DNA of 63,620 nucleotides, the filler included, from Olpidium bornovanus S191 (taxonomy: Eukaryota > Fungi > Olpidiomycota): assembly GCA_017911155.1 (NCBI GenBank). It is 27 parts of 27 records of this genome, joined end to end, with 100 filler letters (N's around TTAATTAATTAA, not from the genome) between each part and the next. Parts side by side here need not be neighbours in the genome. Positions count along the whole stretch, not along the records: positions 17,566 to 21,763 come from JAEFCI010010246.1; 26 more parts are not named here. One strand, written 5' to 3'. This document shows, in pieces, positions 17,466 to 21,763 of this stretch; within the stretch, counting starts at the first letter, position 1, and each line of letters opens with the position of its first letter. The translations under genes and the position numbers were made by a program. The notes beneath the pieces are model-generated. The model saw only the letters and a list, made by a program, of their open reading frames with translations. It ran no database searches and had not been told where the DNA came from.

Positions 17466-18207
17466 NNNNNNNNNNNNNNNNNNNNNNNNNNNNNNNNNNN
17501 NNNNNNNNNTTAATTAATTAANNNNNNNNNNNNNNNNNNNNNNNNNNNNNNNNNNNNNNNNNNNNACGATTAACACACAACGAGCGTATTTGAACTACGA
17601 CGCCCTGATTCCTCGTCGAGGATATGTAGGCAGTCTATGATCGTTGGATACCCATCGGGAGACACGGGACAAATACAAAAATCATGCAGCGTGGGACGCG
17701 AATAATTGCCGGAGGACACATTCGGGACCAGACCATACTCGCTCGTCGACCACGTTTGCTGACAGTGCTTTCTGCGGTGTTATGGACGGTTAGGTCGACG
17801 AGAGGGAGTGTGGCGCCTCGAGGCTCCAAACGTCAGGTTGAAGGCGAGGAAGGGATGGCGGGGATCTGGAATGAAGGAGGCAGGGCGACCAAGTTTCAAC
17901 TATCAAATGCTAAGACCTTCCCCAAACACTTCGTTTCATCCCATTTGAATTTTCTCGCGTCGGAATGGCTTTTCCGTTGAGATTGGAGGTCTCCCTCGAG
18001 ATTTTTGTGGTATCCGGAGATGTGCTAAACCAGCACGTTTTGCACCTTGCAAGAACCTGGTCGTGTTATTTAAGCACTCTGCAGGCCCCGAACAACCCGT
18101 TCCGGGGGTCCCAAATCCAAAACTTGATCTCGAAATTCCACCATACTCACGGGTTTTTTTATTTTGTTTCCCTCTGGAGGGAAGGAGAAAGGGGAGTAGC
18201 GTTGCGA

Positions 18208-19486
18208 CTACGGAGCGGGTGGCATGTCAGCTGCCGCCGAGCCAGGAGCCGACGCGTTGCCGCTGGAGGAAGACCTGCCGGGAGCAACGGTCGCCGAGGA
18301 AGACCCGCTGGCAGATGGCGGCGCGGGCGCGGCCACCGAGGAAGGCTCGCTGGTAACAAGGGGCACGGGGACCGAAGAGGCGGAGGTCAACAACAGAAGG
18401 GTGACGGCGGCGGTTGTCCGCGACCGCGTGCTACGATGACTGCTGGGGGCGGTGGCGGTTGCAATCCTGCGACTTGTTGTGGAGGCAGAGGTAGAGCCGG
18501 ATGTTGCCGGGACAGGCGCGTGTCTGGTCGTTGACGCGGAGGCGTGGCTGGCGCGAGCCTGCGACCGCGTGACGCGATCCGAAGGGGGGGGGGCGCCCTC
18601 GTCCCTGCCGCCTCCCACGGGATTGTCGTCGTCGTCGCGCGGGACGTCCCGCCAAATGTCTGAGAAGAGAAAATTTTGTGAGCACGTTTGGCCCTGGTCG
18701 ACCCGGGACATGTCGATGGGAGGGTCCTCTCGTGCGACCGCGAGCCGGCGGAGAAAATTATAGGATTCGGCGCTTTGGCGGAGCTCCGGGAACCAAGAGT
18801 TCCGGCCCCGGGGAGAAATGGCTGCCGGGGCATCGTCTGCGAGTTCGGCGTCTGGCTGCGGCGGAGAGACCGGGTGCATGAGGACGCGAACATGAATATA
18901 ACTGTCGTTGGCGACGGGAGCGGGGCGCAGATCGTAGTCGCAATCTTTGGGGCCGCCGGGGCCACAATACTGCGTGTCTGACGGCAAGAACAGGAATTCC
19001 AGATTGCGAGGATCCGCGGGAAGCCAAAAGGAGGCTGGCCAATTCATGACCTGGAGGAAGGCGTCAATCATTGATCGGCGAAGTCTGCAAGTAGACGTGG
19101 AAGAGGTTATCTATCAAAGTGGAGTTGTAGTACGAAAAAGAGACCAAAACTGACTAGAGAAGGGCGACGCAGGCTTCGGTACTTCCGTCCTCGTGGACAG
19201 CGCGAAACCACGCGTAATGGATGAACCGGATCATCCGCCCGCGCAGAGTGCATTGACGTTCTGGCGTCGGCCGATCAGCAACGCACGTAGCTGCAGCCGC
19301 GAGCAAGCTGCGAGAATCGCGCAACCGATGCGCCCAGAAGGCCGTGTAGATCCGACGGGTGGTGGCGTCGAGACGCCTCTCGGTGAAGGCGGACGGGGTG
19401 GGCGCAGGGGCAGCGGATGCAGAGGACGACATTGTGGACGGGTGGACGTGGCGGAGACTGAAGTAGGGGGTAATGGTGCGGAGCAA
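18208..19486 (-). pseudogene. Intronless orphan ORF pair (110 aa + 287 aa) separated by a stop and a frame change
   Basis: ORF 19154-19486 (MSSSASAAPAPTPSAFTERRLDATTRRIYTAFWAHRL...) and ORF 18208-19071 (globular N-half, Ser/Thr/Ala tail). No family recognised. Confidence 0.3.
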
Positions 19487-19919
19487 GTGGCGTTGGTGGA
19501 GCCAAATCCGACTCGTTAAAAACCAAAAGAGCTGTCAACCACGTGATACACCGTGACTGCCGAAACAAGCTCGTCAGTCACGGGGGGGGCGGGCGGCTGT
19601 AGTGAAGGGGAACGAAGGGGACGAGGGGAAAACAGGAGAAACCGTGAGGAAACCAAAAACCGCGCATTAAATTCCAGAGACCGAACATAGAATTCCAACT
19701 ATTGCAGAAGAGTGAGAGGCTGGTTGCCACGGAGCAATTTGTACTACGCGTAGGCCTCTTCTCCCCCCCCCAAAAAAAACGCGTGCGAACCCACACGAAA
19801 GGCAGCCAACTCTCCTTCCTCCCACTCTCTCTTCTCTCTCTCTCTTAACGCGCACTCCCGCACTCTCGGCAAATACCGTCCCACGAATAAGAGGCCCTGC
19901 GCCGCCTTGAAAACCTGCC

Positions 19920-21763
19920 TTCCTTGGTCTCAGTTATGCAATAGTGCCCTCACAGGGAAGCTCTGGGCGGAAGTGTCGTGCGCCGTCGTTTACGTTTACA
20001 ATTGATCCTATCATACGGCCGTTGACGGGATCCCGCTGCATCGCATCGACCCCAATGGCCATATCCCGGATCTCTCGCATCTTCGGATCATCGGTTGCGT
20101 GGCGTACGCTCATATTCCAAAAATACTTCGGCCGGTACCTCGGAAGCTCACTGCAACGGCCGATACGTTGATCATGGTCGGATACTCCGACGTTTTGAAA
20201 GGTTGGCGGTTGTGGAACCCGGTCAATGATTCCGTCGTCAAAAGAGTCGACGTCACTTTCGACGAAGCGAAATTTTACCATCCTGATCTTTTTGGACTCC
20301 CTCGCCATGCGGTCGTTGATCCCGACCGTCCTCTGGATGAGACGCCGGAGGAAACGCAGGAGGATGAGATCAAGAGGATCTTGAAGCACGACGACGATTT
20401 TGACGGCCATGGTGAACGTCGATACCTTATCAAATGGCAGAACTATCCGTCGTCCGAGAACACTTGGGAACCCCGGGATTGCCTACTCGGCAGCCCTCAT
20501 ATTCTCACAGCGTACGAGCGCAAGGTTGGTATTCCGCCTGACCCTGTCGTTGCGTCACCTGCTATCACTTCCGATGTTTCTCTTGTTGATGCCGGACTTC
20601 CGGATCCGACCGTCAATGCTCACCCGGCCGCCGTGTCGGAGACAGGACTCCCTTCATTTTTCGCCTCTCCGTCGTTGCTCGGCTCGTGGCCACCCGAGCC
20701 GCACTCGTACGACGATGCAGTCAGCGGTCCGGAAGCAAACCATTGGAGAGAGGCGATGGCCAAGGAATATGCCTCGCTCCTTGCCTTGAATACCTTCAAG
20801 GTGATCAACCACGATGATTTGCCGCCGGGAAGCAACATCGTCAACAGCAAGTGGGTATACAAACAAAAGCTCCATCCAGACGGATCCCTTGATAAGTACA
20901 AGGCGCGCTACGTCGCCCGCGAATTTACGCAGCGGAAGGGCGTAGACTACGACGAAACTTATGCGCCGGTCATCTCGCATCAAGCGCTGCGCCTGATGAT
21001 CGCCTTCGCTACCGCGAAGCGGATGCCATTGATGCAAAACGATTATTGCAACATTTATTTGAAATTGCACCTTCGGCATCGGGTCTTCATGGAGCCAATT
21101 GTCGGCTTCCCGAATGATCGTCCCGATACGGCCCTGGAGATGATCTGTGCCCTCTACGGATTTCATCAATCTGCTTTTGAATGGCATGATGCCGTTGACC
21201 GTGACCTCAGGGAGCATGGCTGGTTACTTCTTCCCGTTGAACGCTGTCTCTAGGTAAGGTACCGCCATCGAAGGGGGGATGGCAATACGGAATATCTGAC
21301 GCCAGACCTGCTTGCTCTCCCCTACGGCTCGGCCATCGACCTATCGAAGCTCAGAAAAATCGCCGATGCGATGCTCCGTGTCGATGAGGTCGTTGACGCA
21401 GTCCTCAAGCCCTCCGAAGTTCTGGAGCTCGACGCAGTCCTCGGACTCTTCGTTGACGATGTCGTCTGGGGCGCGAAGACCGACGCAGACCGCATCGGAG
21501 AGGAGCTCAGGTCGAACTTCCATATGGATCCCGCTAGAGAAGCCACTCACGTCATTGGAATCCGTATCATTACGAATCCGAGCTGCTCCGAGCGGATCCT
21601 CATCCAGGATCACATTGTGTCGAAGATCTTGGAGCGCTTCGGCATGGCGAACTCGCACGCCGTTAAAACGCCAATCGATTCATTTGAGAATCTCGAGAAG
21701 CGCGTTGATACGGCCACGGCGAAAGAGATCCTCCGATACCAGCAGGTCATCGGATCTCTTCTC
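19920..21763 (+). mobile_element. Ty1/copia pol fragment: integrase C-terminus - chromodomain - reverse transcriptase; two in-frame stops, both ends truncated
   Basis: One frame: LWAEV..VYVYN*, GCVAYAHIPK..KL..MVGY..KGWRLWNP..DVTFDE, chromodomain, EPHSYDDA..WREAMAKEYASL, KWVYKQK..DGSLDKYKARYVA..TQRKGVDYDETYAP, LYGFHQS, FVDD, YQQVIGSLL. INT-before-RT order is copia. Stops at 20003 and 21251. Confidence 0.93.
20360..20524 (+). other. Chromodomain inside the copia pol
   Basis: EDEIKRILKHDDDFDGHGERRYLIKWQNYPSSENTWEPRDCLLGSPHILTAYERK matches the consensus YEVExIL..YLVKWKGY..ENTWEP..L. Confidence 0.9.

Follow-up and report, generated by a model that had tools for sequence, protein, structure and literature searches.

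A chromodomain between integrase and reverse transcriptase in a decayed Ty1/copia copy of Olpidium bornovanus and in its relatives

The DNA analysed here is a stretch of 63,620 nucleotides of the fungus Olpidium bornovanus S191 (Olpidiomycota; GenBank assembly GCA_017911155.1), made of 27 parts joined end to end and hereafter called the window. Its piece at positions 17566-21763 (record JAEFCI010010246.1) holds a fragment of a Ty1/copia retrotransposon in which a chromodomain lies between the end of the integrase and the reverse transcriptase (RT). As a whole, the observations are best explained, with a probability of about three in four, by a decayed copy from a copia lineage carrying a chromodomain on the tail of its integrase, which in intact relatives would tether integration to methylated histones. 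This lineage would be a small Ty1/copia group in which a canonical HP1/Clr4-like chromodomain directly follows the SH3-like domain of the integrase.

The piece has a GC content of 57% and gives a single long coding signal on the plus strand, which, translated from position 19799, runs from the integrase tail through the chromodomain into the copia RT. Positions are counted along the whole window, and the reading frame is that of position 20099. The segments of the copia fragment are the following:

19928-20056, plus strand: start of the homology, in the last helix of the integrase core region (LTGKLWAEV...VYVYN; tblastn and translation)
20057-20278, plus strand: copia-type integrase C-terminal SH3-like domain (PF25597 SH3_retrovirus, 74.8 bits, E 5e-21, model positions 2-72 of 73)
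20363-20365, plus strand: GAT codon (Asp) at the first aromatic-cage position of the chromodomain (sequence; aligned with the cage Tyr of Clr4)
20366-20524, plus strand: chromodomain (Pfam PF00385, AlphaFold2, Foldseek)
20525-20815, plus strand: Pro/Ser/Ala-rich linker from chromodomain to RT (family alignment columns about 236-290)
20816-21763, plus strand: copia RT, ended by the edge of the piece (RVT_2)

The RT is of the copia type (RVT_2) and the integrase stands upstream of it in the same frame, two marks of a Ty1/copia element. The HMMER check proposed in an earlier note, a first reading of this DNA from its sequence, placed the Chromo, copia SH3-like and RVT_2 domains above their Pfam cut-offs, and no rve integrase core was found upstream. 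The cut-off for SH3_retrovirus is 27 bits; Chromo (cut-off 25.1) scores 45.9 bits in context and 50.2 bits (E 2.4e-13) alone; and RVT_2 (cut-off 31.6 bits) matches at 20816-21223 with 89.4 bits and again at 21437-21676 with 26.3 bits (model positions 163-242). The YVDD box of the RT reads FVDD in the window (21449-21460). The linker is poorly conserved, its length and sequence differing among relatives in the family alignment.

The earlier note had described integrase tail, chromodomain and RT as one uninterrupted frame. Its chromodomain coordinates (20360-20524) and its motifs agree with Pfam, but the frame is open at 20006-21250 only, being bounded by two in-frame stops, TGA at 20003-20005 and TAG at 21251-21253. 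Past the TAG it resumes without a frameshift up to the edge of the piece at 21763, as follows from a single alignment of 622 residues with the relative P0124. A frameshift within the RT, at which the list of open reading frames (ORFs) had hinted, was ruled out by the same alignment, in which the frame is continuous across position 21251.

Homology begins abruptly at about 19928, the tblastn alignments starting at 19928-19934 with the relatives P0146, P0129, P0131 and P0143 and at 19958 with P0124. Gag, protease and integrase core are therefore missing, and none of the three was detectable in any frame of 17566-19927 (Pfam; tblastn with five family polyproteins). Long terminal repeats (LTRs) and a primer-binding site are likewise absent from the window copy, for which the repeat search came back empty. 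Concerning the RT, 54 positions were scored as strongly conserved, with a conservation of 80% or more in a set of 55 copia RTs. Of these positions, 40 are retained in the window, versus 44-50 in most relatives compared, and its 14 replacements include several non-conservative ones (G>E, P>I, K>C, G>R, Y>I). Given the two in-frame stops, the 5' truncation at about 19928 and the presence of the integrase end only, the window copy is a dead pseudogene fragment of an LTR retrotransposon and not an intact element. What the earlier note called a copia retrotransposon is thus indeed Ty1/copia coding sequence (SH3_retrovirus upstream of RVT_2), in the form of a 5'-truncated fragment.

To find relatives, 1.84 billion representative proteins were searched exhaustively with HMMER, the query being the integrase tail and chromodomain (window 20006-20572). 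This search gave 2920 matches, and in about 17 protein clusters the match extends over the two domains without a break. As for the word-index searches, the best 120 matches to the whole ORF were ordinary copia RTs with at most 41% identity, none of them carrying a chromodomain; the chromodomain alone returned 4 candidates only; and the family alignment returned HP1-like and generic proteins, the known members not being recovered.

In the relatives, the Pfam domains follow each other in the order Retrotrans_gag, Pol_BBD, gag_pre-integrs, rve, SH3_retrovirus, Chromo and RVT_2. This order is complete in four full-length proteins of 1457-1701 aa (P0124, P0129, P0131 and P0143), and nine shorter proteins show the fitting part of it. 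The closest relative is P0124 (43% identity over 622 residues, E 1e-155), which is collinear with the window all along the integrase tail and the chromodomain, past the residues that directly follow the latter, and on through the linker into the RT. A second protein, P0146, has 66% identity to the window along 82 integrase-tail residues (tblastn). These two proteins, the closest to the window, both come from the read archive run SRR10938843. The contig L004 (5025 nt) has terminal direct repeats of 166 nt and one intact ORF of 1492 aa, and the contig L005 (5102 nt) has terminal direct repeats of 127 nt and one intact ORF of 1457 aa; gag and protease are present in both. Since each combines a single intact ORF with terminal direct repeats, as in an assembled LTR element, intact members of the chromodomain-bearing copia lineage do exist, judging by their sequences.

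The succession of SH3-like domain, chromodomain, linker and RT is common to independent contigs from Logan, ENA, JGI and NCBI, which are collinear with the window on either side of the chromodomain. The match continues into the residues right after the domain (TAYERKVGIP vs. AAYDDYAGIP). Other copies lacking the chromodomain, or a chimeric join, would have refuted the earlier note by its own account; neither does, as the relatives carry the domain and the independent contigs run collinearly across the integrase tail, chromodomain, linker and RT. Among 80 generic copia loci (JGI metagenomes, fetched via an integrase-tail motif), none matches the family chromodomain profile. A chromodomain between copia integrase and RT is, on these comparisons, a real but rare arrangement, as that note had claimed; in the literature searched it is reported for the diatom CoDi-A/CoDi-I elements only.

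The gag of the full-length members (L001 346-5451, L004 266-4744 and L005 276-4649) corresponds to PF03732 (Retrotrans_gag / PEG10 N-capsid), with a weak match to Ty3_capsid as well. It has no match to the usual copia gag family PF14223, which is found in P0254, a protein without chromodomain. The gag region of P0124 contains a Gly/Asn/His/Arg-rich tandem repeat of 30 nt, HGNNHGNHRGRGNNHGHRGNRGG (L001 1675-1734), at the location where copia elements usually have a zinc knuckle region.

The named relatives are only fungal, from Olpidiomycota and Chytridiomycota; most relatives are Logan, ENA and JGI contigs. O. bornovanus has three partial proteins (KAG5462474.1, KAG5463735.1 and KAG5459893.1) and Powellomyces hirtus has two (TPX52903.1 and TPX54414.1). 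On the O. bornovanus contig JAEFCI010002080.1 (L086, 55% GC), the copy is frameshifted inside the chromodomain. KAG5462474.1 has been modelled across this decayed copy (L086 26-1978), where the frameshift splits the chromodomain and the gene model omits part of it, which is why Pfam does not call Chromo on this protein.

An RT tree was built by quick neighbour-joining from 283 RT columns of 55 sequences, with 200 bootstraps. By RT distance, the five RTs nearest to the window all come with a chromodomain, and P0124 is placed as the sister of the window in 198 of the 200 bootstraps. In 100 of the 200 replicates, the smallest clade to unite all seven RTs that have a chromodomain comprises 8-10 taxa. 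P0209 (1413 aa), a close RT relative with the same integrase tail, has no chromodomain between its SH3-like domain and its RT (residues about 760-960), and could serve as a natural contrast with which to date the gain or loss of the domain. To judge from the RT sequences, the pattern agrees better with a single ancient gain, followed by a loss now and then, than with a join made recently.

Another observation on the RT was a lineage-specific insertion of about 55 residues directly before the YVDD box (window 21257-21433, plus strand). It is present at full length in P0124 as well (PYG[SK]AID... motif), whereas the inserts of P0129, P0209 and P0245 at this site are shorter and dissimilar and most copia RTs, the ordinary ones, have none (RT alignment).

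The window chromodomain aligns end to end with that of Clr4 and further matches Swi6, SUV39H1, CBX7, Chp1 and HP1 (phmmer, PDB sequences). The AlphaFold2 model of a 77-residue segment, obtained from a 14-sequence family alignment, has a mean predicted local distance difference test score (pLDDT) of 81 and shows three strands followed by a C-terminal helix (E-E-E-H). Its best PDB matches by Foldseek are the chromodomains of Rhino, Chp1, CDY1 and MPP8 bound to histone H3 trimethylated on lysine 9 (H3K9me3), with target-normalised template modelling (TM) scores of 0.74-0.85 and root-mean-square deviations (rmsd) of 1.1-2.0 A. By its sequence and predicted fold, the segment is a genuine HP1/Clr4-type chromodomain. 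As for the donor, the family profile gives 66-71 bits for chromoviral domains, and 64-76 bits for chromoviral and HP1/CBX-like host domains together; because both kinds score alike, this domain of 55 residues does not separate an origin in a chromovirus from one in a host gene.

Since the copia order puts the integrase before the RT, the chromodomain stands in the middle of the polyprotein. The protease of an intact element would cut within the variable linker 3' of the chromodomain, at a putative site, and would so leave the domain as the C-terminal tail of the mature integrase. The ligand of its aromatic cage would be a histone lysine in methylated form, most likely H3K9me, as the family cage and the structural neighbours suggest, and this binding would steer the integration of the complementary DNA (cDNA) to heterochromatin or repeat-rich DNA. 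The window copy itself is incapable of these steps, as gag, protease and the catalytic core of the integrase are gone, two premature stops interrupt the frame and the cage contains an Asp.

The chromodomain might also serve something other than the steering of integration: it could recruit the host silencing machinery or evade it, aid import into the nucleus, or take part in assembling particles within a polyprotein that stays uncleaved. We allow a small but real chance for such a role, seeing that no function is known for any chromodomain-bearing copia element and that the domain is internal to a polyprotein whose cleavage site is putative. Against it stands the position after the integrase C-terminal domain, which is that of every known case of integrase-linked targeting (chromoviruses, Chronos, Ty1 and Ty5), and the conserved methyl-lysine cage of the relatives argues for the binding of a histone tail. 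In Ty1 and Ty5, copia elements of Saccharomyces, the integrase C-terminus bears the targeting determinant in the same position, just before the RT; these tethers, which lead to RNA polymerase III (Pol III) or, for Ty5 via Sir4, to heterochromatin, are short peptide motifs binding Sir4 or a Pol III subunit and not folded histone-reader domains.

Several points weigh against the explanation as a whole, that of a decayed copy from an old chromodomain-copia lineage with histone-guided integration. The cleavage site, the histone mark read and the targeting are, for every member, things that we infer; the O. bornovanus copies are degenerate too, which makes activity in the named hosts uncertain. The RT tree is coarse, with 40 of its 55 sequences of unknown chromodomain status and most comparison sequences starting inside the RT, and P0209 nests near the group, so that loss of the chromodomain or multiple gains are possible. 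The Foldseek E-values are modest (4e-4), the domain being short. Finally, as no close copy of this element was found, the Asp in the cage could be a subfamily trait instead of damage.

This Asp was considered in its own right. The cage of the window reads Asp-Trp-Tyr and so has two of the three aromatic residues, the Trp (KW) and the third-position Tyr (QNY) being kept, as the earlier note had reported and as the sequence, the Clr4 alignment and the alignment of relatives all bear out. The cage of the relatives is Tyr/Phe-Trp-Tyr/Phe, with the second-position Trp (KW) and the third-position Tyr/Phe (KGY/KGF) conserved. At the first cage column of the 19-sequence family alignment, Tyr occurs 13 times, Phe 3 times, and Asp in the window alone; P0151 is not cleanly aligned at this column, and P0128 has Tyr in its plain sequence (NEYVVKRIV). 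The altered histone-mark reading proposed in the earlier note is not upheld by an Asp unique to the window among 19 aligned members and borne by a decayed copy.

Because the Asp is unique among the relatives and the copy also shows two stops, truncation and RT replacements, it is most likely, from these alignments, the product of decay after insertion, which crippled the cage of a dead copy, rather than a new specificity. No close copy from which to read the ancestral codon was found in JGI metagenomes, GTDB genomes or IMG/VR, and an exact-protein look-up of two ORFs of the window gave no match. An imperfect 12-nt tandem repeat, ACGCCGGAGGAA / ACGCAGGAGGA, lies at 20342-20364 in the acidic leader of the chromodomain (Tandem Repeats Finder (TRF) score 39, which is low). 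As this repeat ends on the Asp codon, replication slippage might be an alternative to a point change as the source of the Asp, the repeat itself being possibly due to chance.

That the Asp is instead a fixed, functional feature of a subfamily, altering or widening the ligand (for example to a non-methylated or differently modified tail), seems unlikely to us. In its favour, the Trp and the third-position Tyr are kept and the remainder of the domain is modelled confidently, no sibling copies showing the ancestral state were found while the nearest relative is only 43% identical, and plant group II chromoviral chromodomains are also without some of the cage aromatics. On the other side, Tyr or Phe occupies the position in 16 of the 18 relatives, the closest one (P0124) included, and in a copy with two stops, a truncation and 14 replacements at conserved RT positions, one deviating codon is what neutral decay predicts.

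That the junction is an artefact or a one-off of this locus only, whether an assembly chimera or a recent recombination of copia with a chromovirus or host gene, is hardly credible: the arrangement is indeed rare (0 of the 80 generic copia loci and 0 of the best 120 word-index matches), but the relatives already refute it, since the collinearity extends over the join in contigs of independent origin, taken from other data sets.

With respect to known systems, copia elements with an integrase-linked chromodomain are a kind already described, in diatoms. The integrases of diatom CoDi clade A have a putative C-terminal chromodomain, and no other Ty1/copia element was then known to have one (Llorens et al. 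2009, PMC2774666). Later, chromoviruses and CoDi-I were the only prior cases of an integrase chromodomain named when the oomycete element Chronos was added as a convergent gain (Ustyantsev et al. 2017, PMC5348765). CoDi-A/CoDi-I of Phaeodactylum tricornutum, compared through their published description, resemble the window lineage in being Ty1/copia elements with a putative chromodomain on the integrase C-terminus. They differ in host, since the named relatives of the window are zoosporic fungi and not diatoms, and no diatom proteins were among the matches of the exhaustive HMMER search that span integrase tail and chromodomain. For fungi or chytrids, a full-text search that included surveys of fungal LTR and fungal copia elements, Repbase lying outside it, returned no published description of a chromodomain-bearing copia element.

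The Ty3/gypsy chromoviruses (MAGGY, Tf1 group), whose chromodomains guide new insertions into heterochromatin (Gao et al. 2008, cited in PMC5348765), likewise have the domain joined to the C-terminal end of the integrase, and the group I chromoviral chromodomains of fungi and vertebrates have three cage aromatics, as have the relatives of the window. The window lineage differs from them in its RT (RVT_2, not RVT_1), in an integrase upstream of the RT, in an integrase end of the SH3_retrovirus type (PF25597) and not SH3_Tf2-1 (PF24626), and in a chromodomain that is internal and not terminal. The window was accordingly rejected as a chromovirus, given its RVT_2 domain, its integrase before the RT and its chromodomain followed by the RT. 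Chronos is, similarly, a separate LTR-retrotransposon group with an acquired integrase-linked chromodomain, evidence that captures of this kind recur; it differs in superfamily (Ty3/gypsy), in host group (oomycetes) and in having its chromodomain at the 3' end of pol (PMC5348765).

A true chromovirus was available for contrast on the 18.5-kb contig L003, with the Pfam order RVT_1, RT_RNaseH, rve, SH3_Tf2-1 and Chromo. At L003 600-15023, this Ty3/gypsy chromovirus is found alongside P0188, a copia element with the chromodomain, and a separate fragment of a copia integrase tail; the chromovirus lies on the opposite strand with a dUTPase-containing ORF upstream. This cluster of transposable elements, a single example, fits insertion into repeat-rich DNA.

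Outside the copia fragment, one further feature was recorded in the piece:

17566-19927, no strand assigned: GC-rich flank outside the copia fragment (composition, Pfam, tblastn)

This flank of 2.4 kb adjoins the truncation point of the copia fragment, reaches a GC content of 68% and contains overlapping long ORFs on both strands, one example being a Ser/Ala/Pro-rich ORF of 287 aa on the minus strand (18208-19071). Within it, six ORFs had no credible Pfam match, no tRNA, Rfam family or repeats were found, and tblastx against all fetched loci was also negative.

The window copy is dead and uninformative on function; its value lies in the lead it gives to the intact relatives L001, L004 and L005 and, secondly, in the presence of the lineage in early-diverging fungi, for which no published description was found. 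It is a tentative suggestion, which we hold to be rather less than an even bet, that this is a previously undescribed chromodomain-copia lineage of zoosporic fungi (Olpidiomycota and Chytridiomycota) and uncultured relatives, whose chromodomain was gained independently of the chromoviruses and of diatom CoDi-A. If true, integration guided by histone marks would have arisen convergently once more, and experiments could draw on the intact members of the lineage (about 5 kb, with a single ORF). Integrase-linked chromodomains are the best-understood means by which retrotransposons choose safe landing sites, and the known cases are nearly all Ty3/gypsy elements. A copia lineage with its chromodomain in mid-polyprotein makes one ask by what protease cuts the integrase comes to keep the domain, and shows once more that the same solution can be reached from different starting points.

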